From Camelus dromedarius (Eukaryota), in the NCBI RefSeq assembly GCF_036321535.1, contig NC_087452.1, positions 34,658,001 to 34,722,000 on the forward strand: a DNA stretch of 64,000 bases, written 5' to 3'. Below are positions 2,457-34,671 of this stretch, one piece after another; within the stretch, counting starts at the first letter, position 1, and each line of letters opens with the position of its first letter. A model generated the notes under the pieces. That model saw only the letters and a program-made list of their open reading frames with translations. It was not told the DNA's origin and searched no databases. The position numbers and the translations under genes are program-made.

Positions 2457-3590
2457 TATTTATTTATTTTTAAATTTTTTAATTTAATTTTATTTTTAAA
2501 CATTTTTTATTGAGTTATAGTCATTTTACAGTGTTGTGTCAAATTCCAGCGTAAAGCACAATTTTCAGTTATACATGAACATACATACATTCATTGTCAC
2601 ATTCTCTTTCGCTGTGAGCCACCACAAGATCCTGTATGTATTTCCCTGTGCTACACAGTACAATCTTGTTTATCTATTCTACATTTTGAAATCTCAGTCC
2701 CTTCCCACCCCCCATCCCCCTGGCAACCACAAGTTTGTATTCTATGTCTATGAGTCTGTTTCTGTTTTGTATTTATGTTTTTTTTTAATTCCACATATGA
2801 GCGATCTCATATGGTATTTTTCTTTTTCTTTCTAGCTTACTTCACTTAGAATGACATTCTCCAATAACATCCATGTTGCTGCAAATGGNNNNNNNNNNNN
2901 NNNNNNNNNNNNNNNNNNNNNNNNNNNNNNNNNNNNNNNNNNNNNNNNNNNNNNNNNNNNNNNNNNNNNNNNNNNNNNNNNNNNNNNNNNNNNNNNNNNN
3001 NNNNNNNNNNNNNNNNNNNNNNNNNNNNNNNNNNNNNNNNNNTTTTGAAGTAGGGTTCCTTCTGGATATATGCCCAGGAGCAGGATTCCTGGGTCATGTG
3101 GTAAGTCCNNNNNNNNNNNNNNNNNNNNNNNNNNNNNNNNNNNNNNNNNNNNNNNNNNNNNNNNNNNNNNNNNNNNNNNNNNNNNNNNNNNNNNNNNNNN
3201 NNNNNNNNNNNNNNNNNNNNNNNNNNNNNNNNNNNNNNNNATGACGGCCATTCTGACTGGTGTGAGTTTTAATTTGCATTTCTCTGATAATTAGTGATAC
3301 TAAGCATTTTTTCATGTGCCTATTGACAATTTGTATTTCCTCCTTAGAGAATTCCTTGTTTAGGTCTTCTGCCCATTTTTGGATTGGGTTGTTTGTTTTT
3401 TTCTTATTAAGTCGTATGAGCTGCTCATATATTTTGGAGAACAAGCCTTTGTCGGTTTCATTTGCAAAACTTTTCTCCCATTCCATAGGTTTTCGTTTTG
3501 TTTTATTATGGTTTCCTTTGCTTCTAAGTTTAATTAGGTCCCATTTGTTTATTCTTGTTTTTATTTCTATTGCTTGGGTAGACTGCTCTA
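2457..3590 (-). mobile_element. 5'-truncated L1 with 16-bp TSD
   Basis: TSD CATCCTCCTGAAATTT at 2441-2456 and 3591-3606; T-rich tail on the left; ORF2 peptide [12 protein letters not shown]...MEWEK. The empty site is present in the paralog near 51577-51592. Confidence 0.92.
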
Positions 3591-7089: not shown

Positions 7090-9083
7090 ATGGAGACCCA
7101 GAGGGCCAGCCTCTCCCTGGGCCGCTGGCCACTGTGGCTACTGCTGCTGGGACTAGCGGTGCCTTGGGCCAGCGCCCAGGCCCTGAGCTATAGGGAGGCG
7201 GTGCTTCGAGCTGTGGATCGCCTCAATGAGCAGTCCTCAGACCCCAATCTCTACCGCCTCTTGGAGCTGGACCTGCCGCCCAAGGCTGTGAGTCGGGGAG
7301 GGGCTGGGGAGGGAGGTGTCTCCTGCCAGGCTTGGCCACACTGTCCCTCCCTTTGCTCGTGCTGTACCTCCTGTCAGGAAGGCACCTCTCCCTCTAAGTG
7401 GGATCCCACCTCTACAGAAATCCTCCCAGAGCTGGGTCCCCTCCCCTTGTGAGAGCCTTCTGCCTGGCATCTCTGCTGTGGGAACAGAGCCCTGACAGCC
7501 CGCTCAGGCTCCAGGGACTCCTGGGGGCTCCAGGGATACGCTGGGGTCACTGGCTCTGGGATGTGACTTCCCTGCTTCCAGTCCCCTGTGCACCCCATTG
7601 TCTTCCCACCAGGGAAGGGCTGTGCTCAGCCTTGGGGTTCCAGTGACAAGGTCTTTCCCTGCAGGTGTTCCCTGACTTCCCTCAGCCCCTCCAAGGGGAA
7701 CTGCCCCTCAGGAGAGCGGGTCTGAGTTCCCCTCCTGCTCCCTGTGAGCCTGGGAGCACAGGACCAGGCTGTGTCCTCCTCCCCTCTGCACCCAGCCCCC
7801 AGCCCAGGGCCAGGCACATGTGAGGGGCTGTCAAGGGGGCTGTCCTGCTGGGGGCAGGGACACAGGTCACACAAAGGAGCATGAGCCTGAGCCAGTCTCC
7901 CCACTTTGATCCTTGAGCAGGACGAGGACCCAGATGCCCCGAAGCCTGTGAGCTTCACGGTGAAGGAGACCGTGTGTCCCAGGAGGACACAGCAGCCACC
8001 GGAACAGTGTGACTTCAAGGAGAATGGGGTGAGGCTGGGGGCTTAAGGTGCTGGTGGGTGCCTCCCAAGACCCGAACAGGAGGCTTGGGGCGGGTTGTGG
8101 TTAGCAGCCCCTGGGGTGAGGCTGGTAGCTGGGGGTGCTGGTGGATGCCTCCCAAGAACAGGAACAGGAGGCTCGAAGGTGTGGTGTTATTTGCAGCCCC
8201 TGGGGTGAGGCTGGGTGGTTATGGCTCAGGGGTTACAGTGTGACCTGGTGTCTCCCCTTCCAGGTGGTGAAACAGTGTGTGGGGACAGTCACTCTGGACC
8301 AGTCCAGGGACCAACAGGACATCACCTGTGATGAGGTGAGTGACCCCTTCCAGGCTGCAGAGGCTGCTGCTGGGTCTGGTTTGTGGAACATCCTTTGGAC
8401 CAATTCTCCTCTGTGCCATCCCTGTAGCGGCAGGAAAGCCCTCCTCCCCTGGCTCCCCCTCACCCGAGCCCCAGGTCTCCAGGCCGGGCTCTGCAATCCC
8501 TTAGAGCAGTGGTTCTCTCATTGGGCTCCCCATACAGGACGTGTCAGAACGGCAAAAATTCTCAGGCCCCACTCTGACGTACTGAATCAGAGTCTAGGTT
8601 GGGGCCCAGTAATTTGTCTTGTAAGAGCCCTTGTAAGGGATTCTGTGCTGAAGTTTAAGAGGCACTGAGTAGGGTAATGGGCTTTTAGCCCCTGCTTCTG
8701 TCCTGCTTTGCTGGGAAGGGCTTGTGCCCCTGGGAAGCCCCTTGTCATCTCTGGGTCTTGGCTTCCTCCTCTGTGAGTGAGTGTAGGGATTCAACCATGT
8801 GCTCCAAAGGTCACACCCAGAGGGTGAACGGGGGCCTCAGGGCTCCTGGGGTGGCACTGGGAGGGGGATCAGCAGGTGAGGACAGGGGGTCTTGGGTTGA
8901 CCCTGGTTCCGACCCAGAAGAAATCTGTTTCCTCCTGGTTCACAGCTTCAGAGTGTTAGGAGCATTCGCCGGCCACGGCTGCCAAGGCCAAGGGTGCCAC
9001 GTCCATATATCCCACCAAGGATACCAAGGCCAGTATTGCCGCCACCACGGTTTCCTATTCCAAGGTTTCCGAGAGGACGGTGA
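7090..9083 (+). CDS. CATHL: Cathelicidin gene 1, 171-aa precursor; predicted mature Pro/Arg-rich peptide [39 protein letters not shown](-GR), PR-39/VicBac-like
   Basis: Exons 7090-7287, 7921-8028, 8264-8335, 8946-9083, all GT-AG and phase 0. [13 protein letters not shown] signal, [21 protein letters not shown] and four cathelin Cys are present. LQSV precedes the peptide and G-R precedes the stop. Confidence 0.97.
8507..8667. mobile_element. MER5A-like hAT element in intron 3 of gene 1, shared by all seven genes
   Basis: CAGTGGTTCTC...GAGGCACTG termini and tactgaatcagagtct core. Copies at about 16628-16792, 25799-25964, 33988-34152, 40974-41124, 56452-56610 and 61797-61955. Confidence 0.75.
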
Positions 9084-12200: not shown

Positions 12201-15200
12201 CTCTTCATTCACAGAATACTCTTAAAACTTGTATTATACAACTGCATTCATATAAACATGAATATAACCCAAGCTGCTTTTCATCTTATGTATTCATCAA
12301 TATGTCAGTGTTTTCATCCGTGATTTTAAACAATTAAAAGTAAAACTTTCTGTGGATCCCTAGATGTCTCAGGGGCTAGGAACGCTGCCTAGTGTGCTGA
12401 CCGATAAGTGGGTCCTGGCAGGTGACGATCCTGTAGGCGCCCAGACACGCCTGCAGACACTAAATGCCTTCTGCTGTCTTTTCCAGGATGACTTAACCTC
12501 GTGGTTCTCTTTCAGCTCCTAGTTTCAGCTGAATTGGTCCATGGGAAAGAGGAAGCTGATCCTGAGCGGAGGGTCCTGACCCTCACCCTTGACCCAAATC
12601 CCTGCCTTCACAGCACCATGGCTGCCATCGCAGGTCCCTGCAGAGGGCAGGGGGCAGGGGGCAGGGCCTGAATCCTTCCCCTTGTCCCTGTGAAAAGGAC
12701 AGGTGGTGGGTCATTGAGGGGCATGACTCCATGTCCCCAGTCTGTCATTTCTTGAGTAGGAGGTCCTTGATGGAATGACGTAGCCCATGGGTCTCATTTT
12801 CCTCATCAAATGGGCAGTCAGAGCTGGTGGAGATTTCCAAGGTTAGGGGCACAGTTTGGGGTTCTGGTCCAGTTCCATTGCTCTGGAGCCTCTGGAGTCT
12901 CACAGACAGGAAGGATGGTTGGGAGGAGAAAAGGAGCCGGGACGTCCAGATCATGGCTAATTTCCTGAGGTTGTTGGCACGACGGGTGCATGAGGGTTTC
13001 TCAATGATCAGATGTGGAGTCAGGGGCCAACCAACCTGGGGACAAGGGCAGAGGAGCCTTTCCTGAGAACACGTCTGCTCTGACAGGCTATGAGGACAAA
13101 CCAGGAAAGTCAGATGCTAGAGGCAGGGACAGCACACCCCCATCCAGGCAGTTGTAGTCTGAGGACCTGACAGGCGACATTCCAAAGACCCAGACTGTCC
13201 AAAGTCTGAGCAAACGCAAAGGTGCAGAGGCAGGAAAGCACAGAGAGGATTTCAAGGGGATCTGATACCCGGTCACCGTGGGTTTTGCTAGTTATTTTCT
13301 ACTGCAATCACCTCCTTTTCTTCCTCCTTCTTGGGAAAAGGATACAGCTTGACCAAGAGGCCACTGGGGCAACACCCGGACTGTGACACCAGGTTGCACA
13401 GAAGCCCCTCTCTCCTTCCTTCTCGAAGGGTGAGTGCGAAACCAGCACATCCGACCAGGCTGTTACCTTCTGAGGTGCCCCATTCCGTTGCCCAGAGTCC
13501 CCAGGTCACAGGTGGCCATGGCCTATCCCAGGCCTTCAGTCTCAGGGCCATTCCATGGGACACTGGATTAGAATTGGCATCTGGTCTCTGGGATCCTCTA
13601 ACACATCGGCTCATTCACTTTCCCAGCTGGACCCCCTCCTCCTCCCTCTCTGGCCACTCCATCCTGGTGTCTCAACCTGAGCCCTGGAGAGGGAGTACCT
13701 TGGGGACAAGTCAGAAGAGACTTTGTGAGGCTGTGGGAGCTAAGATGGGGAGTTGCTGTTTCTCTGGTTGAAGGTCAGATAAGGCTTCACAAAACGAAAA
13801 GTCACGGCAGTCAGAGGGATCAGGTGTAGCGATATGAGAAGAGCAGAGGCTCCGAGGGGCCTGAGAGGTTGGGGTGGACGTGGCGGCCTGACACAGGGTT
13901 TTGCAGGTGAGCACCTGAGGACAACCTGATCCAGACCCTGAGCCACTGACTCAAGGCGGGAGGTTTGATGGACCCCTGGACAATGGCAGGGAACACTGGG
14001 CTGTGGTGTGGGAAGAGCCTGGAACCAGAAAAGGTGGAGTCTGGAGGTTGTGGCTACACTTCAGAGGAGAGGAGATGGTGGTAGGACAGGGCAGGGGTGA
14101 CAGTGGGGACAGGGAGGGCCCTCAGAGGAAGGAGCAGGTGGGGTTCCCAGGCTCTCAGCTCAGGGCTCCCGTGAGGGCTCCTAGCCAACAGCCCCAGACA
14201 GCCCTGTGCTGACAACCAGGAGTGTTCACAGGAGTGTTGCCTCGGACCCACAGACCAGTGATGTGTGTCCCTGATAACTAGTATCTGAGGAAGGGATGTG
14301 CCCAGAATGCATGAGAACTGCTTTGAGAAGCTGTACAGATCACGTGTGCAAGCCCTGCAGTAAAAGTTTTATTAAAAGTTCAGTACTTAGATTAGACAGA
14401 GCAGGAGGCACCCGGGAGGCCAGGAAGTGGACCCAGGAAGGTGGTCCCAGGGGAGAATGGGGGAGGGGGCAGTTTCAGTAGACAGAGGGGTCCCTGGCAC
14501 CTGTGAAGGCAAGGACAAGGCTTCAGCATGCCCTTTGTATCATTCGAAAGCTGTTAAGCAGGCATGGACCTTGAGTTGAAAGAGGACAAATAGTGGGGTC
14601 AGAGTGTAGATGAGCCTTCTCTTACTGGCTGTCTGGGTAAGGGGAACAGTGTGCATCTGGAAGGGGCTGGGACAGGACATTTTTAGAGTGAAGAAGGCAA
14701 AGGAGAAGAATCCAGAAGAGGGGACAGTGGAGGAGATGCCCTGACTGGCTGAGGGCTGGGTCCGCAGAATAGGACGGTGTGGCCCTGATGTCTGCCTAGG
14801 GAGTGGATGGGTGTGAAAGGCACTAGATGGGGGTGGTCCTGCCATCTATTCATCATATGTTAACTGAGTGCCTACTGGGGGCCAGGAGGCCCAGGAGCTG
14901 GAGGTTGTGTGGTGAATACACTCTTTCAGCCTGATTCTGAGGAGATCACAGTGAGGAGGCCGAGAGGGTGTAGGACACAGCCATTCCCTCTGTCTCCTGG
15001 AGGACTCAACCCTGTGGAGCAACCCTGCCCATGAAACTCCCCATGGGGCCCAGGAGAGGCCGAGATGCTGTCAGGGAGATGGAGGAACCTTTTCTTCACC
15101 TTGCACAGGAGGCAGACCTCACCCACTGCCCAGCAATCCCCTGAGGCAAGAGCGGGGCCTGAGGCAAGTCCAGCTCACACCCTGGCCGGGGACAGGGATG

Positions 15201-18200
15201 GGGCAGGTGGGGAAGGCTCCTGCTTGAGCAATTGCATCAGGCCCAGGCTGAGCATAAAGGAGGGTCCTGTGGGCTGGGAGGAGGCAGACTCGGGGACCAT
15301 GGAGACCCAGAGGGCCAGCCTCTCCCTGGGCCGCTGGCCACTGTGGCTACTGCTGCTGGGACTAGCGGTGCCTTGGGCCAGCGCCCAGGCCCTGAGCTAT
15401 AGGGAGGCGGTGCTTCGAGCTGTGGATCGCCTCAATGAGCAGTCCTCAGACCCCAATCTCTACCGCCTCCTGGAGCTGGACCTGCCGCCCAAGGCTGTGA
15501 GTCGGGGAGGGGCTGGGGAGGGAGGCGTCTCCCGCCAGGCTTGGCCACACTGTCCCTCCCTTTGCTCGCGCTGTACCTCCTGTCAGGAAGGCACCTCTCC
15601 CTCTAGGTGGGATCCCACCTCTAACAGAAATCTTCCCAGAGCTGGGTCCCTTCCCGTCGTGAGAACCTTCTGCCTGGCATCTCTGCTGTGGGAACAGAGC
15701 CCTGACAGCCCGCTCAGGCTCCAGGGACTCCTTGGGGCTCCAGGGATACGCCGGGGTCACTGGCTCTGGGATGTGACTTCCCTGCTTCCAATCCCCTGTG
15801 CACCCCATTGTCTTCCCACCAGGGAAGGGCTGTGCTCAGCCCGGGTGTTCCAGTTTCAAGGTCTTTCCCTGCAGGTGTCCCCTGACTTCCCTCAGCCTCT
15901 CCAAGTAGAGTTGCCCCTCAGGAGAGCGGGTATGAGTTCCATTCCTGCTCCCTGTGTGCCTGGGAGCTCAAGACTAGGCTGTGTCCTCCTCTCCTCTGCA
16001 CCCAGCTCCCAGCCCAGGGCCAGGCACATGGGACGGGCTGTCAAGGGGGCTGTCCTGCTGGGGGCAGGGACACAGGTCACACAAAGAAGCATGAGCCTGA
16101 GCCAGTCTCCCTACTTTGATCCTTGAGCAGGACGAGGACCCAGATGCCCCGAAGCCTGTGAGCTTCACGGTGAAGGAGACCGTATGTCCCAAGAGGACAC
16201 AGCTGCCTCCGGAGCAGTGTGACTTCAAGGAGAATGGGGTGAGGCTGGGGGCTTCGGGCGCTGGTGGGTGCCTCCCAAGACCCAAACAGGAGCCTTGGGG
16301 CAGGTGGTGGTTAGCAGCCCCTGTGGTGAGTCTGGGTGTTTATGGCTCAGGGGTTCCAGTGTGACTTGGAGTCTCCCCTTCCAGGTGGTGAAACAGTGTT
16401 TGGGGACAGTCAACCTGTACCAGCTCAGGGACAACTTCGATATAACATGTAATGAGGTGAGTGACCCCTTCTGGGCTGCAGGGGCTACTGATGGAGGTGG
16501 TGTGTGAAACAGCCTTTGGACCAATTCCCCGCTGTGCCATCCCTGTAGTGGCAGGAGGGACCTCCTCCCCTGGCTCCCCTTTACCTGAGCCCCAGGTCTC
16601 CAGGCCGGGCTCTGCAGTCCCTTAAAGCAGTGGTTCTCTCAGTGGGCTCCCCTCTTGGGAACTAGAGAAAAAGGCTGATTCTCAGGCATGACTCAGACCT
16701 ACAGAATCATTGTGTGATGTGGAGCCCAGTAATTTCTATTTTAAGAGCCCTTCTGAAGGATTTCTGAGTGTGCTGAAGCTTGAGAGGCAGTGACTAGAGA
16801 CAGGACCTTTCTGCCCCTGCTCCCGTCCTGCTTTTCTGAGATGGGTTTGTGCCCCTGGGAAGCCCCCTGTCATCTCTGGACCTTGGTCCTCATCTGTCTG
16901 TGGGAGTGATGATTCAACCACGTGCTCCAAGTGACACAGACAAGGAGGTCTAATGGTGCCTCAAGTCTCCTTCGGTGTTCCAAGATGGAAGAATTTCAGA
17001 TGGGGAGGGATCTGGTCTTGTCCCTAAGTCAGTCCTCACAAGAATCCTGTTTCCTTCTGCTTCACAGCTCCAAAGTGTCGGGTTATTTGGCCCGATTCTT
17101 GGTATCGTCCGTGCCGGTGTGAAATTGGTTCTAGATAAGTTTGGCAAATAATCGGATAGATTGGTGATAAAATTCGCCCAGGGTAGAGTCCTAATGATCA
17201 CCTAACTCTGGCTCAGTTGTTCAAACTCTGGAAATAAATTCTTATGAATTTCAAATTCACCTGTCTCTTGTCCTACTCTTACCAGGGGTCCTTAACCCCC
17301 ATTGCCCTCTTGAGTGTGTGTGTGTGTGTGCGCGCGTGTGTGGTCACTTCCGTGAACACAGAGATGGGTGTGGCAGCTGTTCCTTCCAGGAGGGCAGGGG
17401 GAGGCAGCAGGGCCGGGAGGGACAGGACAGGGCTCCATTCTCAGGAACCCCATGCCCTTCACACTCCCCCGCCCTCCTCCTCCTCCACCAAGTAGGGGCT
17501 TAAAGAGACCTAGTCTGTGTGCAGTGCTGCTGGGGATGCTGTTCCTGCTGGTATGGAGGTGACAGTCCAGGAGGACCAGGTGGCTTGTTAATCACTCGGG
17601 GAGACACAGCTCTGTCTCCTGCTGGTGGGCTCTAAGGTCAGCCTGCAGGTACAATGTCCAGATTGTTCCACTTCCCTCACAATCTGAACACTGAAAGAGC
17701 CCATCCTTCCTGGCTTTTGCTCTGGGCATTGAGACACATCAGTCTTTCTCCTGTGGGGTCTCAGATTTCAGATGTGGGCTTGTGTTCAGGGATCCAATGG
17801 TACCACAATTGGCACCATTAGAAGCAAGCCTCCTGCTCATCGGGGTGAAGGGCTCTGCCTGAGTGAGAGACACACACAGTGACACACAGGCCACATGTCT
17901 GTTTGCCTGGGGGTTTCAGACACTGTCCCTGTCCTGCCCACTCCCCACTCTGTAGCTGACCTTTGTTGGGGGGCAGACTGGAATCACGGGGGAGGCGGCA
18001 GTCCCGGGAGCAGCCTCAACCAACCATCGCTGGGACATTTCCCTCATTGGTGGAAACGTCTCTTCTGTTCCTCACTCCTTGGGGGGCCCACTCCCAGATG
18101 TGTCCCCCCTCCCTGAGGTCCCCAGCTGGGTGGAGCCCCTGTCCCCACTTCAGTGACCTGTCTATTGACTTGTCCTCTTCTGATGTCGATTCTGCCCGGT

Positions 18201-18470
18201 CTCACTTCTCTATTTTTCTGCTGGTGCTTCAAAGGAATCGCCTCCCAGAGCACCTGCTTCCTCTTGAATGCTGGCCTGAGCTCTGCTCCTGGGCCAACCT
18301 GCACCAACACACAGAGCCCCGTGTGTCAGAGGGACAGCGGGCGGGACCGCTCAGAGCACGTGCTCTGTAATCTGTCAGGCTCGTCTGTTCTTGGGGAGCA
18401 GTTGGGGCTGATTTCAGGCAGGTTAGAGGAACCCATGCTTCTCACTCTATGTCACCCCAGGTTGAGGGAG
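9215..18470 (+). repeat. Segmental duplication, copy 1 of a ~9-kb block repeated ~17.36 kb downstream (about 26580-35850)
   Basis: Near-identical spurious ORFs recur at offsets of 17,356-17,382 bp (11981/29344, 12745/30101, 16736/34096, 17963/35345). The 3'-flank block also recurs at about 8.13-8.15 kb spacing. Confidence 0.9.
15299..17151 (+). CDS. CATHL: Cathelicidin gene 2, 153-aa precursor; predicted mature [21 protein letters not shown](-GK)
   Basis: Exons 15299-15496, 16131-16238, 16385-16456, 17068-17151 with GT-AG sites and four Cys. AATAAA at 17233-17238. Confidence 0.95.
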
Positions 18471-19419
18471 GTTCTACAGAGGAAACTAAGGGAATTACTT
18501 CTGTCCGCCGCTGGATACTTCATTGCGACAGGCAGAACAGAGACCGGGGGAGGATCTGAGCCACGTCACTGAGCCCCCCAGCCCCAGACAGGAGCCTGCA
18601 GGTGCTGTGGGGTCTGGGGGCCCTGTTGGGGATGGGTGCTGAGGCTCAGGCTTCCGAGGGCAGACCCTAGGAGTGGTCTGGGATTGGCAGTGTGGGGACC
18701 GCCTGAGAGGGCTGGAGCGCGGTAAGGGCTGAAACTGGGAGTGTGTGCGAAGGAATCGGTCTGTCATAACCCCCGTTATTAGGTTGCTGCGGAGGGAGGA
18801 GCGGAACTCCTCACTCTGCCTGGCCCGCTGGCCCCTGGGAGCTGTGGGAGGGCAGAGTGCTGGGGCAGAGGCGGGGCCCAGGTCTGAGCCCATTCTCAGA
18901 ATGAGCTAAGTTCAAGGTTGTTGTGTGGGTTTGGCCGCTGCAGCTGTTCAGCCTCCAAGACATCCGTTTACACCTGTGCATGAACAAGGTCCCTGTGCTC
19001 AGTGGGCAGAGTTGTGGGCTGTGATGCTTGCCCCGGAAGACAGCCCCCAAAATTTATCTTGTTCACTCTGTCTGTGCCTCCCTAGTGGTTCTAACTGGGG
19101 CCACAGGTGTGGACTTTCGCCCTCACTGGCCCTGAAATAGGTAAATGAACGGTGACTGTCCCTGCTGAGCAAGGCATCCCCTGCTTGGAGGTCACGTCCA
19201 CTGGGGAGAGATTTTCTATGGAGAGGAGGGGAGATGCCCTCCTCTCTCCAGCCCCATCTCACTGAGTTTGGTAACTGCTCTCAGAGCAGCTCTGGGACCC
19301 TTCCCATCGCCAAGGCAAAACCTGCTTCTGGGGTTGTCATAGTGACAACACTGTGAAGAGCACCTGGGCCCACGGAGTCCTACACCCATCGTGCCTCCTC
19401 CTCCTGCTCCTCCTCCCTC

Positions 19420-20180
19420 CTCACCCACTTCTTTTTAATTGTAAGCGTTGTTAAGGGACATATCCTCCTTATAAAATATTCAAGCAATCCTAGTACAAAT
19501 ACACTCCTTTTGACAACTTGCTTTCCTGCCTCACGCATCACAATCTCCACATTAGAAACAACCTCCATTCATCAATCGTGTGAGTGTCTGTTCTGATGTT
19601 TTTTCTAGACATGTATATACATATAGGCACATAAAGATACCGTGTCTTGCTTTATGGTGACTGATGTTTACATAAATGGAATCAGTTAGTACGTTTATTT
19701 TGCAATTGGCCTTTTCCCCTTAAAGATACATCTGGCAACTTTCTAGTTTTAAAACCTTCAATTGAAATATTACAACTACATAAGAAAAACACACCACTGA
19801 TAAATGGACAGCTTGCTGAGTGCTTGCTATGTGAACGCCAAAGTGTAATCAGCACCCAGAAGTCTCCTCCCCCTTCTACCCTTAACCATGACCCCGACTT
19901 TGAACGCCACAGATCAGTGATGCCAGATTTTGAAATGTGTAGAAAATAGAACCATACCGTATATACGCTTTTCAGGTAATTTCTTCATGCAACATGTTTG
20001 TGAGAATCCTCCGTGTTATTGTGTGTAATTATCTTCGTTCATATTTTGTTGCTAAGTTGTAGTCCGCTGTATAAATATACCAGAATACGCTTATTCTTTT
20101 ACTTATGAAGGATATTTGGGTAGTTGCCAGCTCATTTTTTGAAACGGCTGCACTGTAGTCCATATGGTGGACATAGCATT
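19420..20180 (-). mobile_element. Old L1 (L1M-type) 3' fragments
   Basis: AT-rich sequence with L1 3' UTR-like antisense phrases (ttcatgcaacatgtttgtgagaatcctccgtgtt, gtagtccgctgtataaatatacc). Boundaries are approximate. Confidence 0.55.
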
Positions 20181-22970
20181 CGCACCAATACGTGTCTCAA
20201 GGGTTTCTAGTTCCCCAACTCGGCCCAACAAAGATACAAGGAAGCACCATGGTTTCTTCCTCCCCATGCACGTGAGTGAGGCTCCCGACAAGTGGGACTT
20301 CAGGGGGACGCCGACAATGGCCTGTGCTGTGGCAGGCTCTCCATGTGAGCATGTCCTGGGGGTGGCTATGGAGTGGATGGCTGCTGTCCCTCTTTCCCCC
20401 AGGAGTCTGGAAGGCTCTGTAGAGACTGGGACTCTGATCCTCATGTCCAAGTTCGTATGGGAGGAGTTTCTCTATGGAGGAGAAGAGGGCCTTCCATGCA
20501 TGTGTAAGAAATCTCCCATTTTACAAACCAGGAGAAAGAGGTGCAGTTGGTGAAGGTCTGGTTTAAGGTCACGTATGTGCTCCCCAGGTTGGGCAGAAGG
20601 CAGGACCAGAGGACAGGTCGCTCAGCCCTGACCCTGGCTCCTTCTCTTGTACCATTTTGAAGTCCAGGGCTTGGGGCTGGGATAAGGAAGTGTCTAAACA
20701 CAGGTGAGACTGTGCTTTTTCCAGTTGGGGGTTTTAACTGCAGGATGGGATGTCTGCCTCAACCAGACTGGGATGGGAAATAGAGGGGGATGGGAAAGGA
20801 GGGAACCCACGTAGGGTGCCAGGCGGTGGAAACACACTCTTACCAGCTCCAGCAGGACCGTCTGCTCCCACCTCTTGGCTGGGGTGTCCTCTGTTGGGTT
20901 GGGGGGAACGTTAGGAGAGAACCCAAGGCCTAGCCTGACCATCTCGAGGCACAGCTACTGTGACCTTGGAGACCCTCCCAGTCCTGACCCGGCTCCTTAG
21001 ACCCCCTTCCCTCTCACCCTGCTCCTCTCGCTGTCTAAGCAAGAACTCAGCCAGGGAATGCAGGAAATGGAGGCAGTGCCCAGATGCGCCTGTCTACAGC
21101 TCACCCTCCCGCTCCCCGTGTGGGCTTCTCAGTTGTGTCTGAGACAATGAGAGCTGGGCTCCCACTCATTGCTGCTGCGAGTTCCCACCAGGGCAGAGTT
21201 TTCCCAAAGAAGTCACAGCTGATAAGAGGCCAACCAATGATCAGACACATGTCTGCTGGACTCCAGAGTCTAAGGACCCATCGAGCCCTCGGGGGCCGCT
21301 TTCTGCCCTGTTGATAATAAGAGATGCTGTTTCTGGACCATCAATCCTGGTCTCTTTGGTCCCAACTTCTTTCCGTGGGTTGACTCCTTTATCAGACCTC
21401 ATCCTTGATCAGCCACCTGTCCCCATGGAAGGATGGGGAAGGGGACCTCAGTCCTAAGGTTTAGGAAACACAAAGGTGCAGAGGCAGGAAAGCACAGGGA
21501 GGATTTCAGGGGGACCTGATACCTGGTCACCGTGGCTATTGCTAGTTATTTTCTCCTGTAATCACCTCCTTTTCCAACTCTGACTTGGGAAAATGATACA
21601 GCTTGACCAAGAGGCCACTGGGGCAACACCTGGACTGTGTTACCAGGTTGCACAGAAGCCCCTCTCTCCTTCCTTCTCCATGGCTGAGAGTGCAACCAGG
21701 GCCATCTGTCCAGACTATCGCCTTCTGACTTGCCCCAGCCAAACACCGAGAATCCCACAGGTCACCTGAGGCCAATTGGTACCCCAGTCATTCCATGGGA
21801 GACTGGATTAGAACTTGTGTCATGGTCTCTGGGCCACTGTAACACATTGGCTCATTCATTCTCCCAGCTGAGCTCCCTTGTCCTCCCACACTGGCCACCT
21901 CAGAGCCCTGGAGAAGGGGTCACTTGGGGACAAGTCAGAACAGACTTCCTGAGGCTATGGGAGCCAAGATAGGAGTTGCTGTTTCTCTGGTTGAAGGTCA
22001 GACAAGGCTTCACATGGTGGAAGGTCACAGCAAGCAGAGGGATCAGGTGCAGAGTCGGGAGGAAGGGAAAGAGCTCGAGACAGGCCTGAGAGGTCGGGGT
22101 GCACGTGGCAGCCTGACCTGAGCATGCAGGGCAGCGAGTGAGGACCGTGGGAAGCATCAAGGTTCAGACCCTGATGCCGGGAGGAGGTGTGTGAGCTGCT
22201 GAAGGCAGGGGGTAAAATGGCCAAATCGGCAATTTGATGGAGCCCCCAGACACAATGTGGAAGGAGAATTGATTTCTAGAAGAGCCTGGAACCAGAGACG
22301 GTGGAGTCTGGAGGTTGTCACTACACTTCAGAGGAGAGGGGGTGGTGGCAGGACAGGGCAGGGGTGACGGGGGGACAGGGAGGGCCCTCAGAGGAAGAAG
22401 GAGCCAGTGGGGGCTCCCAGGCTGCCAGCTCAGGGCTCCCGTGGGGGCTCCCAGCCGACAGCCCCAGACAGCCCTGTGCGGACAGCCAGGGGTGTTCACA
22501 GGAGTCTTGACTCAGAGACACAGACCAGTGATGTGTGTCCCTGGTAACTGGTATCTGAGGAAGGGATGTGCCCAGGAATGTGTGAGGACTGCGAGGAGAA
22601 GCCATCTGGGTGCACCTGTGCAAGCCCTGTGTATTACGAAGAGGGTCCTGGGAGGAGACGGAGAAAAAAGAGGAAACAAGGTGGCAGGAGGGGACTCAGG
22701 AGAGCGACACCAGCAGAGAATGGGGCAGGAGGCGGTTGCGGGAGGACAGAGGGAAGCCCAGAGCCTGTGTAAATAAAGACAGCGCGTCAGCATGGGTTTT
22801 GGATCCAGCGACGGCTGGCCAGCTTATAGGGCCTTGAGTGTGAGAGAAAACACATTGGGGTCACGATGCGGGTGATCCGATCTCAGGCTTGGTTGTGGGG
22901 AATCTCGGGCTTGGTTTTGGGAGGCAGGACAGCAGGACAAGATAGTGGGGTCTGGGGACACGACATTTTT

Positions 22971-23856
22971 ATTCATTTTTTTTATTGAAGTATTGTTGAG
23001 TTACAGCGTTATGTTAGTTTCTGGCATACAGCATAGTGATTCAGTTATACATGTATGTATTTCTTTTCATATTCTTCTTCAGTACAGGTTTTTACAGGAT
23101 AGTCAATATAGTTCTCTGTGCTATACAGTAGGACCTTGTGTGTCTATTTTACATATAGTAGCATCTGCTAATCCTGAACTCCCAGTTTATCCCTCCCCAC
23201 CCCTTTCCCACTCCTGGTAGCCATAAGTTTGTTGTCTATGTCTGTGAGTGTGTTTCTGTTTTGTAAATAAGTTCATTTGTGTCGTTTAAAAAGTCCACAT
23301 ATGAGTGATATCATGTAGTTTTTGTCTTTCTCTTCCTGGCTTATTCACTTAGTATGATAATGTCTGGGTCCATCCATGTCGCTGCAAAAGGCATTATTTT
23401 ATTCTTTCTTATGGCTGAGTAGTATTCCACTGTATATAAATACGACAGCCTCTTTATCCAGTCGATGGACATTTAGGCTGTTTCCATGTCGTGGCTATTG
23501 TAAACAGTGCTGCTATGAACATTGGGGTGCAGGTATCTTTTCGAATTAGAGTTTCCTCTGGATATATGCCCAGGGTTGCTGGATTATACAGTGAGTCTAT
23601 CTTTAGTTTTTAAAGGTCTCCACTGTTTTCAATCACAGTTTCACAAAATTACACTCCCATCAACAATGTAGGAGGGTTCCCTTTTCCCTAGACACTCTCC
23701 AGCATTTTAATAATGGCCATTCTGACCAGTATGAGTTGATACATTGCTGTAGCTTTGATTTGCATTTATCTGATAATTAGCCATATTGAGACTCTTTGCA
23801 CGTGACTATTGGCCATCTGTATGTCTTCATTGGGGAAATATCTGTTTAAGTCTTCA
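22971..23856 (-). mobile_element. 5'-truncated L1 with 15-bp TSD (one mismatch)
   Basis: GGACACGACATTTTT (22956-22970) and GGACAAGACATTTTT (23857-23871); ORF2 tail LNRYFPNEDIQMANSH. Empty site GGACAGGACATTTTTAG in paralogs near 14670 and 32030. Confidence 0.9.
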
Positions 23857-24490
23857 GGACAAGACATTTTTAGGTTGAGAAAGGCAGTGGAGAAGAATCC
23901 AGGAGAGGTGACAGATGGAGCGCAGCCCCTCACTGGCTGAGGGCTGAGTCTGGAGAGCAGGATGGAGGGTTCTTGACTGTCTGCCCAGGTGCTGGCTGAC
24001 TGCATCAGGCTTTGGTTGGAGGTGGTGCTGTCATCCATTCATCGAACTTTAACTAGATGCCTACTGGGTGCCAGGCGGTGTGTAGAGATGGAGGTTGTGT
24101 GGTGAATAAACTCCTTCAGCTTGATTCTCAGGAGGTCACAGTGAGGAGGCCGAGAGGGTTTAGGACACAGCCTGGTCCCTCCGTCTCCTGGAGGACTCAA
24201 CCCTCTGGAGCAACCCTGCTCATGAAACTGCCCCATGGGGCCCAGGAGAGGCCGAGATGCTGTGAGGGAGATGGAGAAACCATTTCTTCACCTTGCACAG
24301 GAGGCTGACTTCACCCACTGCCCAGCAATCCCCTGAGGCAAGAGCGGGGCCTGAGGCAAGTCCAGCTCACACCCTGGCCGGGGGCAGGGATGGGGCAGGT
24401 GGGGAAGGCTCCTGCTTGAGCAATTGCATCAGGCCCAGGCTGAGCATAAAGGAGGGTCCTGTGGGCTGGGAGGAGGCAGCCTCGGGGACC

Positions 24491-26357
24491 ATGGAGACCC
24501 AGAGGGCCAGCCTCTCCCTGGGCCGCTGGTCACTGTGGCTACTGCTGCTGGGACTAGCGGTGCCTTGGGCCAGCGCCCAGGCCCTGAGCTATAGGGAGGC
24601 GGTGCTTCGAGCTGTGGATCGCCTCAATGAGCAGTCCTCAGACCCCAATCTCTACCGCCTCCTGGAGCTGGACCTGCCGCCCAAGGCTGTGAGTCGGGGA
24701 GGGGCTGGGGAGGGAGGCGTCTCCCGCCAGGCTTGGCCACACTGTCCCTCCCTTTGCTCGTGCTGTACCTCCTGTCAGGAAGACACCTCTCCCTCTAGGT
24801 GGGATCCCACCTCTCACAGACATCCTCCCAGAGCTGGGTCCCCTCCCCTTGTGAGAGCCTTCTGCCTGGCATCTCTGCTGTGGGAACAGAGCCCTGACAG
24901 CCCTCTCAGGCACCAGGGACTCCTGGGGGGCTCCAGGGATACGCTGGGGTCACTGGCTCTGGGATGTGACTTCCCTGCTTCCAAACCCCTGTGCATGCCA
25001 TTGTCTCCCCACCAGAGAAGGGGTGTGCTCAGCCTGGAGATTCCAGTGACAAGGTCTTTCCCTGCAGGTGCCCCTGACTTCCCTCAGCCCCTCAAAGGGG
25101 GATGTGCTTCTCATGAGATGGGGTCTGAGGTCCCCTCCTGCTCCCTGTGTGCCTGGGAGCCCAGGACCAGGCTGTGTCCTCCTCCCCTCTACACCCAGCC
25201 CGCAGCCCAGGGCGAGGCACATGGGATGGGCTTTCAAGAGGGCTGTTCTGCTGCGGGGCAGGGACACAGGTCACCCAAGGAAGCATGAGCCTGAGCCAGT
25301 CTCCCCACTTCGATCCTTGAGCAGGACGAGGACCCAGACGCCCCAAAGCCTGTGAGCTTCACGGTGAAGGAGACCGTGTGTCCCAGGAGGACACAGCTGC
25401 CACCGGAGCAGTGTGACTTCAAGGAGAAAGGGGTGAGGCTGGGAGCTGAGAACGCTGGCGGATGCCTCCCAATGACCCGAACAAGAGGCTTCGGAGGGTG
25501 GTTAGCAGCCCCTGGGGTGAGGCTGTGTGTTTATGGCTCAGGGATTCCAGTCTGAACTGGAGGTTCCCCTTCCAGGTGGTGAAACAGTGTTTGGGGACAG
25601 TCACTCTGGACCAGGTCAAGGACCAAATAGACATCAGTTGTAATAAGGTGAGTGGCCCTTCTTGTTTTGAGCTGCTCTGGGGAGAGGTGTGGAACATCAT
25701 TTGGACCAGTTTTGTTCTTGTTCATTCAGGGCTTCCTACCCTGGCTCCCCCCTCACCTGAGCCCAAGTCTCCAGCCTGGGCTCTGCAATCCCTTGGAGCA
25801 GTGGTTTGTTCTCTAAGTGGCATTATCACCTGGGAACTATTGGAAAGGCAGCTTCTTAGTCCACATTCAGACCTACTGAGACAAAGTTGGGGTGGGTCCC
25901 AGAAATTTGTATTTTAAGAAGCCTTCCTGGGGATTCTGACTGTGCTGAAGTTTGAGAGGCACTGACTACAGTAATGGGATTTCTGCTTCTGCTTCTGTCC
26001 AGCTGTGGTGGCCAGTGATCCGGGGAGGCCTTGGCATCTCTGTGTCCTGGTTTTCTCATCTGTCTATGGGAGTAGGGATTCAACCACATGCTCCAAAGTT
26101 ATAGCCACAGAGTGAATGGGACCCAAGCCTCCAGGAGTGGCTCAGGAGTAGGATGTGTAGAAAGGGACCTGAATCATTTTGATTCTGGATCAGTACTGAC
26201 AAGAAGCCTGTTTCTTCCTGCTTCACAGCTCCAGAGTGTAAGGGGATTTTTTCCACCACCATTCCCACCTGGACCCTTCCCATTTCCCCCTTTCCCACCA
26301 ATCCCGCCAATACCACCATTTCCATTTCCGCGGCCATTTGTTAGAAGACGACGGTGA
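24491..26357 (+). CDS. CATHL: Cathelicidin gene 3, 168-aa precursor; predicted mature [38 protein letters not shown]
   Basis: Exons 24491-24688, 25325-25432, 25576-25647, 26229-26357 with GT-AG sites and four Cys. AATAAA at 26460-26465. Confidence 0.96.
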
Positions 26358-29300
26358 AGGATTGGCTGATACTTTGCCCATCAGAGGACTCTGCTGAATT
26401 GTGAGCCCCCGGAAGTCCTAAGGGTCTTCTTTATTCTGGCTCAGTGTTTCAGATTCTGAAATAAATTGTTCTGAAAACAACTTCCTCTGGTATCTCCCAC
26501 TTACTGTCACCAGGTCCTAAACGCTGGGAGGCCGAGGTTGTGTGTCGGTGTGTTTGCGTGTTTGTGTCTGTGAATGTGGTCACTTCCGTGAACGCAGAGA
26601 TGGGTGTGGCAGCTGTTCCTTCCAGGATGTCGGGGAGAGGCAGCAGGGCCGGGAGGGACAGGACAGGGCTCCATTCCCAGGAAACCCATGCCCTTCACAC
26701 TCCCCTGCACTCCTCCTCCTCCACCAAGTAGGGGCTTAAGGAGACCTAGTCTGTGTGCAGTGCTGCTGGGGATGCTGTTCCTGCTGGTATGGAGGTGACA
26801 GTCCAGGAGGACCAGGTGGCTTGTTAATCACTCAGGGAGACGCAGTTCACTCTCCTGCTGGTGGGCTCTAAGGTCAGCCTGCAGGTACAATATGCAGATT
26901 GTTCCACTTCCCTCACAATCTAAACTCTGCAAGAGCCAACCCTTCCTGGCTTTTGCTCTGGGCATTGAGACAATTCAGTCTTTCTCCTGCGGGGTCTCAG
27001 ATTTCAGGTGTGGGCTTGTGTTCAGGGATCCAATGGTACCACATTTGGCACCATTAGAAGGAAGCCTCCTGCTCATCGGGGTGAAGGGCTCTGCCTGAGT
27101 GAGAGACACACACAGTGACACACAGGCCACATGTCTGTTTGCCTGGGGGTTTCAGACACTGTCCCTGTCCTGCCCACTCCCCACTCTGTAGCTGACCTTT
27201 GCTGGGGGGCAGACTGGAATCACGGGGGAGGCGGCAGTCCCGGGAGCAGCCTCAACCAACCATCGCTGGGACTTTTCCCTCATTGGTGGAAACGTCTCTT
27301 CTGTTCCTCACTCCTTGGGGGGCCCACTCCCAGATGTGTCCCCCCTCCCTGAGGTCCCCAGCTGGGTGGAGCCCCTGTCCCCACTTCACTGACCTGTCTA
27401 TTGACTTGTCCTCTTCTGATGTCGATTCTGCCCGGTCTCACTTCCCTATTTTTCTGCTGGTGCTTCGAAGGAATCGCCTCCCAGAGCACCTGCTTCCTCT
27501 TGAATGCTGGCCTGAGCTCTGCTCCTGGGCCGACCTGCACCAACACACAGAGCCCCGTGTGTCAGAGGGACAGCGGGCGGGACCGCGCAGAGCATGGGCT
27601 CTGTAATCTGTCAGGCTCGTCTGTTCTTGGGGAGCAGGTGGGGCTGATTTGAGGCAGCTTAGAGGAACCCATGCTTCTCACTCTACGTCACCCCAGGTTG
27701 AGGCAGGAAACCTCACAGAGGAAACCCAGGGACTGTGTCGTGTCTCTGCCACAGCATACAAGACTGCAAGAGCTACTTGTTAAAATTTCAGGATTTTCTG
27801 AGTTGGTCATTAAACTCTTGGTCGCTTGAAATCTGCCTTGGTGGAAGAATTTACAGCATGGAAATCAGCAAATGCTACACGTCAGGCCCATCACAGCTGG
27901 TCCATCACTGTCCAACCTGAGAGAGGGCTCACTCATCAGGATGATATGGGCTGTGCTGATGTCATCTGTTTGCAGTTGTCTCCCAGGATTGCTGATCCTG
28001 CTTCAGGAGGGTGGGACATGGATGCTGATGGCTCTCAGGTGCCATAATCCACGGCTTCAAGGCCTCCCCAAGAGAAGCCTGGGGGTTTTGTCCTCTCTGC
28101 CCCCATTCTGTGGCTGGTGACTGACTATGAGGGGACATCAGAGCCCAGCCCCTGTCTCAGTCACTCCTAAAGCAGGGGTGCAATTCTGGTTCCTGGGCTT
28201 TTCTAGGTGAGGCTGAAGCTGGGCTCAGAGGGAGCACCTCTCTGCTCAGCTCCTTCCTCTGCACAACCCTGCTCTCCTCCCCCTCCTGCTGACCAAACCC
28301 CTCAATTAATCACATGACTCTGAATTCCCAGCTCAGGCCCTGCTTCTAGAGAACCGGCCTAGGATGGCGGTGGAGCTGTGTGGAGCCCGGCCAGCTCATC
28401 CCAGGTGGCTCGGGTGTGGGGCCTGACGTGGAGCTGAGAGAGAGGAGAGGCAGAGGTGTGCAGGGTAGGGGTGCGGGAGAGGGGTTGGGGCGGGGCAGCG
28501 CTGGCAGCCAAGGGGCCCTGAGGAGTTTACAAAGTGCTCAGAGTAGGACAGGAGGCCGAGAGCCCGGGGCGATGACTCCTAGTGGTTTCCCGGTGTTTGT
28601 GCAGATGTGGAGGCCACGGACCTCAGTGGGGGCAGCCTCAGAGATCTGGGGGCACAGAAGTCCCACGCAGTGAGGGGAGGAGAAGCAAGAGGTAAGGAAG
28701 AGGGGAGGCCATGAATGGGGACACACAGGGGCTTCTCCTTCCCCCAGACCCCCGCTGTGCCAGGGAGGGACACTGGGCTGTTATCAGGCAAGGTCCTTGT
28801 TGATGTGGCCCTTGACCCCCTCTTCTGAGGTCTCCAGAGTCATTTTCGGGGCCCCTATATGTGACAGGGCACTTCACATTGTCATGAATAGGGCAGAGAA
28901 AGAGAATTCTGAGGAGTATGGACATCTGAAAGCCATTGCTCCTCTGCCTGTGTGGCCCTAGGCAGAAGAAGAGATCTTTCTGGGCCTATGTCTATCTGTA
29001 ATTGGGACCCACATAGCCTAATTTGAGAGGATGGTCAATGGCTTAGCTCGAAAAACAAGGTCGAGTACCACATAGGGGCTGAATCTGAGGCGGAGGCTGA
29101 TGGAGTCTAGGAGACCATAGTTAGTCTGGGTCCATCTCAGGGCACAGATCTGGCTCGTGTGTCGGAGCAGGGACCCAGAGAGACACTTGGAATCCCCATC
29201 AGAACAGCAGGAGGGAAATACACGTCATTCTGTCCTGAGCGAGCAGAACTGGCCCGTCTGCACGAGCCTTTGGCGTCTGGTCCTTACTAGTCAGCAGCTG

Positions 29301-32659: not shown

Positions 32660-34547
32660 ATGGAGACCCAGAGGGCCAGCCTCTCCCTGGGCCGCTTGTC
32701 ACTGTGGCTATTGCTGCTGGGACTAGCGGTGCCTTGGGCCAGCGCCCAGGCCCTGAGCTATAGGGAGGCGGTGCTTCGAGCTGTGGATCGCCTCAATGAG
32801 CAGTCCTCAGACCCCAATCTCTACCGCCTCTTGGAGCTGGACCTGCCGCCCAAGGCTGTGAGTCCGGGAGGGGCTGGGGAGGGAGGCGTCTCCCGCCAGG
32901 CTTAGCCACACTGTCCCTCCTTTTGCTCGCGCTGTACCTCCTGTCAGGAAGGCACCTCTCCCTCTAAGTGGGATCCCACTCTACAGAAATCTTCCCAGAG
33001 CTGGGTCCCCTCCCGTTGTGAGAGCCTTCTGCCTGGCATCTCTGCTGTGGGAACAGAGCCCAGACAGTCCGCTCAGGCTCCAGGGACTCCTGGGGGCTCC
33101 AGGGATACGCTGGGGTCACTGGCTCTGGGATGTGACTTCCCTGCTTCCAATCCCCTGTGCAACCCATTGTCTCCCCACCAGGGAAGGGCTGTGCTCAGCC
33201 TGGGGGGTTCCAGTGACAAGGTCTTTCCCTGCAGGTGTCCCATGACTTCCCTCAGCCCCTCCAAGGGGAGCTGCCCCTCAGGAGAGCGGGTCTGAGGTCC
33301 CCTCCTGCTCCCTGTGTGCCTGGGAGCCCAGGACCAGGCTGTGACCTCCTCTCCTCTGCACCCAGCTCCCAGCCCAGGGCCAGGCACATGGACAGGCTCT
33401 CAAAGGGGCTTGTTATCCTGGGGGCAGGGGGATATGTCACACATAGAAGCATGAGCCTGAGCCAGTCTCCCCACTTTGATCCTTCAGCAGGACGAGGACC
33501 TAGATGCCCCAAAGCCTGTGAGCTTCACGGTGAAGGAGACCGTGTGTCCCAGGAGGACACTGCTGCCACCGGAGCAGTGTGACTTCAAGGAGAATGGGGT
33601 GAGGTTGGGGGCTTAGGGCGCTGGTGGGTGCCTCCCAAGACCCGAACAGAAGGCTTGGGGCGGGTGGTCGTTAGCAGCCCCTGGGGTGAGGAAGGGTGTT
33701 TATGGCTCAGGGGTTCCAGTGTGACCTGAAGTCTCCCCTTCCAGGTGGTGAAACAGTGTTTGGGGACAGTCAACCTGTACCAGCTCAGAGACAACTTCGA
33801 TATAACATGTAATGAGGTGAGTGACCCCTTCTGGGCTGCAGAAGCTATTGGTGGAGGTGGTGTGTGGAACAGCCTTTGGGCCAATTCCCCTCTGTGCCAT
33901 CCCTGTAGCGACAGGAGAGCACTCCTCCCCTGGCTCGCCCTCATCCGAGCCCCAGGTCTCCAGGCCGGGCTCTGCAATCCCTTAGAGCAGTGGTTCTCTC
34001 ATTGGGATCCCCACTTGGCAACTAGAGAAAAAGGCTGATTCTCAGGCATGACTCAGACCTACGGAAGCACTGTCTGTGTTGGAGCCCAGTAATTTCTATT
34101 TTAAGAGCCCTTCTGAAGGATTTCTGAGTGTGCTGAAGCTTGAGAGGCAGTGACTATAGACAGGACCTTTCTGCCCCTGTTCCCGTACAGCTTTTCTGAG
34201 ATGGGTTTGTGCCCCTGGGAAGCCCCCTGTCATCTCTGGACCTTGGTCCTCATCTGTCTGTGGGAGAGATGATTCAACCACGTGCTCCAAGTGACACAGA
34301 CAAGGAGGTCAAATGGTGCCTTAACTCTCCTTCGGTGTTCCAAGATGGAAGATTTTCAGGTGGGGAGGGATCTGGTCTTGTCCCTAAGTCAGTCCTCACA
34401 AGAATCCTGTTTTTTTCTGCTGCACAGCTCCAAAGTGTTGGGTTATTTGGCCGGATTCGTGATTCCATCCGTAACCGTGTGAACAGGGTTCGAGATGCGA
34501 TTGGGAAAGTAATCGGATACGTTGGTGATAAAATTCGCCCAGGGTAG
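32660..34547 (+). CDS. CATHL: Cathelicidin gene 4, 165-aa precursor; predicted mature [34 protein letters not shown](-G), BMAP-34/PMAP-37-like
   Basis: Exons 32660-32857, 33491-33598, 33745-33816, 34428-34547 with GT-AG sites. AATAAA at 34595-34600. Confidence 0.96.
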
Positions 34548-34671
34548 AGTCCTAATGATCACCTAACTCTGGCTCAGTTGTTCAAACTCTGGAAAATAAA
34601 TTCTTATGAATTTCAAATTCACCTATCTCTTGTCCTACTCTTACCAGGGGTCCTTAACCGCCATTGCCCTC

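Follow-up and report, generated by a model that had tools for sequence, protein, structure and literature searches.

This study concerns gene 2, the second of seven cathelicidin genes in a stretch of 64,000 nucleotides from the dromedary, Camelus dromedarius (NCBI RefSeq assembly GCF_036321535.1, contig NC_087452.1, positions 34,658,001 to 34,722,000 of the forward strand). The whole stretch is called the window here, and positions without an accession are counted from its first letter. Gene 2 (15299-17151, + strand) is probably an already catalogued MAP-like paralog, intact and apparently functional, the peptide of which was shortened by two nested C-terminal truncations.

A preliminary description of this locus had presented the product as a new peptide. 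This did not survive a check for prior description, as the exact 23-mer is contained in Table S2 of Panteleev et al. (2022; Membranes 12:515, PMC9146984), whose survey of all living camelids assigned 62 cathelicidins to nine groups. One of these groups is named "23-residue cathelicidins (MAP-like)". The 23-mer of gene 2 is listed there verbatim for C. dromedarius (JWIN01033265.1, JDVD01079641.1) and C. bactrianus (JARL01035147.1), and L. guanicoe (PNXV01004884.1) and L. glama (PNXU01036743.1) have a counterpart, GILGPILRIVAAGLDWLQHKRGK, which also comprises 23 residues with a Gly-Lys (GK) end. Gene 2 has the 23 residues, the Gly-Lys end and the GxxGPILxIV core of this group, and its mature sequence shows no difference from the listed one. 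Judged by this identity, gene 2 is the dromedary member of a catalogued camelid family.

The 2022 survey lists the 23-mers only, without origin, amidation, expression or activity (PMC9146984). In a full-text search the 23-mers of camel and Lama and the alpaca Vp26 sequence discussed below occurred in no main text, only in the supplement of that paper. A 2026 study of dromedary cathelicidins (PMC12872550) assayed three other peptides, including the gene-4-type 35-mer CdPG-3, and not the 23-mer of gene 2. No relevant precedent of a cathelicidin arising by frameshift turned up in the literature searched; the "frameshift" of a rumicidin paper refers to bacterial sbmA. The 58-aa open reading frame of the exon-4 region (16975-17148) found no llama or other camel candidate in a set of 5.8 billion proteins, and the exact pattern of the deletion junction had 0 matches in the JGI metagenome contigs.

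Gene structure and the one-base deletion

Gene 2 has the four exons and three introns of a cathelicidin gene, no internal stop and GT/AG borders throughout; its exons of 198, 108, 72 and 84 nt encode a precursor of 153 aa. Exon 1 (15299..15496, +) encodes the signal peptide and the start of the cathelin-like domain, in total 66 aa ending with LPPKA, and is followed by the donor GTGAG. Exons 2 (16131..16238, +) and 3 (16385..16456, +) add 36 and 24 aa. The Pfam profile PF00666 scores above its curated cut-off on these three exons (E = 1.1e-13, 7.8e-15 and 6.3e-06, respectively), with profile positions 1-97 of 101 covered, and the product contains the four conserved cysteines (Cys85, Cys96, Cys107, Cys124). 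Signal peptide, cathelin-like domain, exon number and a peptide located in exon 4 after Val assign gene 2 to the cathelicidins. Exon 3 has a special 15-residue form, which gene 2 shares with no other genes than gene 4 and, in alpaca, those of the Vp22, Vp26 and Vp35 types; genes 1, 3, 5, 6 and 7 of the window lack it. The polyadenylation signal AATAAA (17233..17238, +) lies 82 nt past the stop, inside the range of 60-120 bp given for camelid cathelicidin genes (PMC9146984).

When 17000-17300 was compared by BLASTN with the window, gene 4 (34361-34662) was matched with 275 of 302 identities (E = 1e-118). Within the window, gene 4 alone is of the same type as gene 2, and its spliced product is identical to XP_064352648.1 (Camelus dromedarius). 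The alignment has a single 1-nt gap, GGCAAA-TAATCGG against GGGAAAGTAATCGG. The coding part of gene 2 exon 4 (17068..17151, +), which starts after the acceptor cacag, pairs codon for codon with exon 4 of gene 4 (34428..34547, +; LQSV, 35 residues and TAG) except for one absent G after GGC AAA. At the deletion site (17148..17149, +) AAA|TAA stands against AAA GTA A in all 35- and 26-residue paralogs compared. The frame now closes DKF-G-K-stop (GGC AAA TAA, 17143-17151). On the + strand, exon 4 begins with LQSV (17068-17079), after which an elastase site Val|Gly is predicted, and continues with the 21-mer (17080-17142), Gly-Lys (GGC AAA, 17143-17148) and the stop TAA (17149-17151).

The former coding tail, now 3' untranslated region (UTR), is still recognizable at 17152..17186 (+; old frame (V)IG-TAG-IGDKIRPG-TAG), with 2 mismatches in 38 positions against the coding sequence of gene 4. 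It carries a TAG at 17157-17159 (+), opposite a TAC in gene 4, and ends with CCA GGG TAG at 17178-17186, the last TAG (17184-17186, +) being the stop of the 35-residue form. The preliminary description was right in each coordinate and base that it gave, from the exon 4 alignment and the lost G to the TAA, the tail and the TAG opposite TAC, and the BLASTN alignment bears out its view that a 1-nt deletion produced Gly-Lys-stop and that the peptide is a shortened descendant of the 35-residue type represented by gene 4.

That description had asked whether the deletion occurs in other camelids, and it does. A segment of the C. bactrianus assembly GCA_048773025.1 is 98.3% identical to window 14500-28003, and in it exon 4 of gene 2 is 100% identical, deletion and tail TAG included; between the two orthologs the introns differ by 1.0-1.2% and exon 4 by 0%. 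The annotated model in the Bactrian assembly has 154 aa and ends exactly on the TAA, and independent splicing likewise gave 154 aa. The peptide is moreover present in two other dromedary assemblies and one other Bactrian assembly (Table S2, PMC9146984). Because the same deletion occurs in several independent assemblies it is not a sequencing error, and as far as these genomes tell it is real and fixed in at least two Camelus species.

History of the truncation

The exon 4 sequences of gene 2, its Bactrian ortholog, the alpaca 26-residue gene VpCATH-26 (RSFPRIYGIIRDGLNWVRDNFGRVIG; XP_072797301.1) and five 35-mer genes were compared codon by codon, and the alpaca cluster was covered over ~68 kb. 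By their codons the 35-residue genes form two subtypes, distinguished by residues 13-16 (GVNW or RVNR) and by linked differences at codons 20 and 22. Among the GVNW genes (Gly13, Trp16, Lys20, GGC22) are the FFHDGVNW gene of the Bactrian camel and one gene from alpaca; the RVNR subtype is represented by gene 4 and by two genes from alpaca. As both subtypes are found in Camelus and in alpaca, the split must be older than the two tribes.

Gene 2 and VpCATH-26 belong to the same exon-4 lineage and have the GVNW marks in common. In addition they share four derived bases which occur in 0 of the five 35-mer genes: codon 8 GAT->GGT (Gly8), codon 9 TTC->ATC (Ile9), codon 21 GTT->TTT (Phe21) and codon 27 TAC->TAG. 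In contrast to gene 2, VpCATH-26 lacks the 1-nt deletion and has 26 residues ending with Gly; with a charge of +3 and a mean hydrophobicity of 0.44 it is more cationic and less hydrophobic. In VpCATH-26 the TAG of codon 27 is the working stop (...GRVIG-stop), and since three more derived bases are shared, the nonsense mutation must have preceded the deletion. The preliminary description had taken this TAG as gained after release of the tail. The present comparison instead marks it as an ancient stop that was formerly in use, not as a chance change that came later.

Relatives from deer, musk deer and pig have 33-37 residues and start with G[LI][FL]xR[LI]RD, from which it follows that the long form and the GLFG start are ancestral. 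The Vp35-like/MAP-34 (cathelicidin-7)/PMAP-37 lineage, including gene 4 and CdPG-3, agrees with gene 2 in gene structure and in the special exon 3. The peptides of the MAP-34/PMAP-37 lineage have 33-37 residues and a charge of ~+6, whereas gene 2 keeps only the first 21-23 codons. Retained from the 35-mers are the GLFG start, Ile6, Arg11, Val14, Val17 and Asp19, while compared with gene 4 Arg5, Arg7, Arg13, Arg16 and Arg18 are lost. The lineage motif is half kept (GLFG-P-I-L-G), with Arg5, Arg7 and Asp8 replaced, and the homology of exon 4 is clear. Gene 2 is by descent a derived offshoot of the MAP-34/PMAP-37 lineage and by its properties not a typical one.

The proposed course would begin with a GVNW-type 35-mer gene of MAP-34/PMAP-37-like character. 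The change of codon 27 from TAC to TAG, together with D8G, F9I and V21F, would have given a 26-residue form, which would survive as VpCATH-26 in llamas and alpacas. After duplication of the 26-mer gene, loss of one G at codon 24 would have placed a stop right after Gly22-Lys23 and produced the 23-mer. Afterwards the retained 23 codons would have kept changing by replacement, losing Arg and Asp and gaining Leu, Pro and Ala, while the cathelin pro-region would have stayed conserved and the introns would have been partly homogenised with neighbouring paralogs. Among the paths that fit the exon 4 comparison, 35 -> 26 -> 23 appears the most economical.

Lama has the 26-mer as well as a GK-ended 23-mer, which shares Pro5, Leu7, Val10 and Ala12 with that of the camel (Table S2, PMC9146984). 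Because of this Lama 23-mer the deletion most likely predates the camel/llama split, as far as the proteins of Table S2 indicate, and a recent origin is not supported. No 23-mer gene was found in the ~68 kb of the alpaca cluster that were covered, which leave out a gap of 16 kb and everything past 20,935,599.

Divergence, predicted peptide and alternative explanations

Gene 2 and gene 4 differ by 7-9% in their introns, at 2 of 114 positions in the 3' UTR and at 2 of 38 in the old tail, compared with 17 of 69 (24.6%) in the 23 retained codons. This excess is significant (Fisher p = 4e-5 against the introns, p = 0.016 against the tail). In the retained codons there are 16 nonsynonymous changes and 1 synonymous change (rates per site dN 0.41 and dS 0.06; dN/dS ~7; Fisher p = 0.03). 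For the pro-region the pairwise dN/dS is 0.017/0.079, with 2 synonymous changes and 1-2 replacements on the gene-2 lineage. When Vp26 and the 35-mers are used to polarise the changes, seven replacements (R5P, R7L, I10V, D12A, N15K, W16L, R18L) and 0 synonymous changes fall on the gene-2 branch. The direction of change is consistent: charge was lost and hydrophobic side chains were gained. The 16:1 ratio and a divergence three times the intron level, limited to the translated codons, argue for selection rather than drift.

In cathelicidins the signal peptide is removed, the pro-form is stored in neutrophil granules, and elastase cuts after Val. Gly next to a basic residue at the C-terminus is a classical signal for amidation. 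Gene 2 has this signal in its sequence, Gly, then a basic residue and then the stop. The GR end of CamBac and VicBac, CamBac being gene 1 of the same cluster, was interpreted as a signal for peptidylglycine alpha-amidating monooxygenase (PAM; PMC9146984). The 153-aa prepro-protein of gene 2 would accordingly be stored in neutrophil granules and cut by elastase after LQSV; a carboxypeptidase would take off Lys23 and PAM would use Gly22, which would leave a Phe-amide 21-mer. Amidation to the 21-mer is plausible from the sequence signal. The predicted monoisotopic masses are 2210.37 Da for the amide, 2211.35 Da for the free acid of the 21-mer, 2268.37 Da for the Gly-extended form and 2396.47 Da for the 23-mer.

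The predicted 21-mer has a side-chain charge of +2, a mean hydrophobicity of 0.71 and a helical moment of 0.446, which is reached by 2.4% of shuffles; it had been described as hydrophobic, amphipathic and of charge +2 before, and these values agree. The gene 4 peptide has a charge of +6 and a hydrophobicity of 0.20, and within the camel cluster the gene 2 peptide is the least cationic and the most hydrophobic one. The 21-mer would act on membranes as a low-charge, very hydrophobic amphipathic helix. Membrane binding and disturbance should depend little on charge, and the selectivity for bacteria may be lower.

The preliminary description had also likened the peptide to frog maculatins and suggested convergence. 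For comparison we used maculatin 1.1 from frog skin, GLFGVLAKVAAHVVPAIAEHF-NH2, as given verbatim in eight published papers. Both peptides have 21 residues, a GLFG start and a Phe at the end, with 6 of 21 positions identical. Hydrophobicity and moment are 0.69 and 0.435 for maculatin 1.1, compared with 0.71 and 0.446 for the camel 21-mer, which with its ~21 residues, low charge, high hydrophobicity and predicted amphipathic helix would work like a peptide of the maculatin/caerin type. Maculatin 1.1, however, has a side-chain charge of 0 and a central Pro15 hinge, whereas the camel 21-mer has +2, lacks Pro15 and has a Pro at position 5. The precursors are unrelated: that of maculatin belongs to a frog skin-peptide family, that of the camel peptide is a cathelicidin (PF00666). 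Gene 2 does not descend from a frog skin-peptide precursor, and its GLFG is shared with MAP-34-type peptides of deer, musk deer and camelids. With unrelated precursors and a GLFG that goes back to the MAP-34 lineage, convergence can be claimed for the general physico-chemical type only. Length, hydrophobicity and the C-terminal Phe thus remain on the side of convergence; the GLFG start, ancestral to the MAP-34/PMAP-37 lineage, does not.

Several observations weigh against a twice-truncated, functional and amidated product. The deletion and the TAG which Lama would share are read from the proteins of Table S2. The introns do not group gene 2 with Vp26 (9-10% apart) and cluster by species; we read this as gene conversion between neighbouring paralogs (concerted evolution), and as a consequence the sister relation of gene 2 and Vp26 depends on the four exon-4 characters. 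Retention of Gly-Lys in Camelus and Lama is not statistically telling (~0.26 by chance), and the 7:0 ratio on the gene-2 branch is suggestive and not significant by itself ((51/69)^7 = 0.12). A search of the literature for camel cathelicidin expression (bone marrow, RNA-seq) found nothing relevant, and in the literature searched there was no expression or peptide-level evidence for gene 2; a camel leukocyte study by liquid chromatography and tandem mass spectrometry reports a prophenin-like match only. The 21-mer is also rich in Val, Ile and Ala, which are elastase sites too, and the stable product could be shorter.

The result of the leukocyte study and the elastase sites also favour the most serious alternative, namely that gene 2 is intact and transcribed and that its end product is not the amidated 21-mer, being instead the 23-mer with Gly-Lys, an elastase-trimmed form or a drifting product of low use. 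The 2022 survey lists a 23-residue form without mention of its amidation, and relaxed antimicrobial selection would be expected to lower the charge, as is seen here (+6 to +2). We nevertheless consider this alternative unlikely, as several findings speak against it: the replacement ratio and the confinement of the excess to translated codons, the retained amphipathic moment, the open frame with its GK end, kept in Camelus and Lama, and the reading of a Gly plus basic C-terminus as an amidation signal in CamBac (PMC9146984). Clearly less probable is the view that the peptide is new and arose when a gene-4-like gene lost one nucleotide in a single, fairly recent event, the tail stop having followed later by drift. 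Deletion and tail are real, and gene 4 is the sole other such gene in the window. Nonetheless, the sequence was published in 2022, alpaca Vp26 has the TAG, there as its working stop, and three further derived bases in common with gene 2, Lama possesses a 23-mer ending with GK, and gene 2 comes from the GVNW subtype and not from the RVNR subtype of gene 4. Assemblies often contain single-base indel errors, so the locus might truly read GGCAAAGTAATC and encode a 26- or 35-residue peptide. This we regard as hardly credible in view of the identical Bactrian exon 4 and the three further assemblies; moreover, the missing G lies outside any G run, and when it is restored the frame still stops at the TAG three codons later.

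With a catalogued paralog truncated in two steps as the preferred explanation, the peptide itself is known already. What is added is a deletion fixed in at least two Camelus species, a corrected two-step history, and replacements confined to the translated codons. The corrected order, nonsense mutation and then frameshift, ties the camel 23-mer to the 26-mer of llama and alpaca. Only tentatively would we go further and propose a twice-shortened cathelicidin (35->26->23, with a Gly as amidation donor at each end) that was kept for well over ten million years and selected towards a maculatin-like, hydrophobic Phe-amide 21-mer of low charge. Such a peptide would behave like frog maculatin and unlike a cationic mammalian cathelicidin, and might have a distinct role, e.g. 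in forming pores synergistically with the cationic paralogs or in acting on the envelopes of fungi or viruses.

Neighbouring genes and minor observations

The seven full gene units of the window represent a mammalian cathelicidin cluster. Their exon-1 ATGs are located at 7090, 15299, 24491, 32660, 39668 and 55132 on the + strand and at 63278 on the - strand. Gene 1 (7090-9083) encodes the Bac7-like CamBac of 41 residues with a GR end, as catalogued in 2022 (PMC9146984). The exon 1 proteins of genes 1 and 2 are identical, Pro14 included, which suggests gene conversion between the two.

The exon-2 acceptor of gene 2, gagCAG|GAC (16120-16135), is a NAGNAG site, and RefSeq X1 and X2 isoforms of paralogs are one Gln apart (PPKAQDED and PPKADED); therefore gene 2 may yield products of 153 and 154 aa. 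The 153-aa product was not among the protein clusters listed, an exact look-up of the spliced product not having been made. In the Bactrian ortholog a 3-nt insertion in exon 3 adds an Asn (RDNNFDITC, compared with RDNFDITC in the dromedary). Its signal peptide has four replacements (W13S, P14S, A23T, P25T), exon 4 being unchanged; these resemble a tract converted from a nearby paralog.

The Bactrian assembly contains two inverted copies of the gene-2/gene-3 segment ~45 kb apart (CM109922.1:34822456-34844321 reversed, and 34888639-34910504). Both hold an identical 168-aa Vp38-like gene, upstream of which one has the 23-mer gene and the other the 35-residue FFHDGVNW gene. The arrangement is either a true segmental duplication in inverted orientation or the result of haplotypes duplicated in the assembly. 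In alpaca (CM108736.1:20851614-20873499) a 35-residue gene (XP_072796896.1) lies between cathelicidin genes of 171 and 169 aa, which are probably VicBac and the Vp38-like gene, to judge from their length and partial exon-4 similarity. The dromedary has the 23-mer gene in the slot flanked by CamBac and the Vp38-like gene. Alpaca Vp26 is located ~45 kb from XP_072796896.1 on the opposite strand. The differing slots and the position of Vp26 thus indicate that the gene order of the cluster was rearranged between the tribes.

Three runs of N, masked or gaps, are present at 336-515, 2889-3042 and 3109-3240, and a (GT)n/(GC) microsatellite lies at 17316-17345, ~170 nt past the stop of gene 2.

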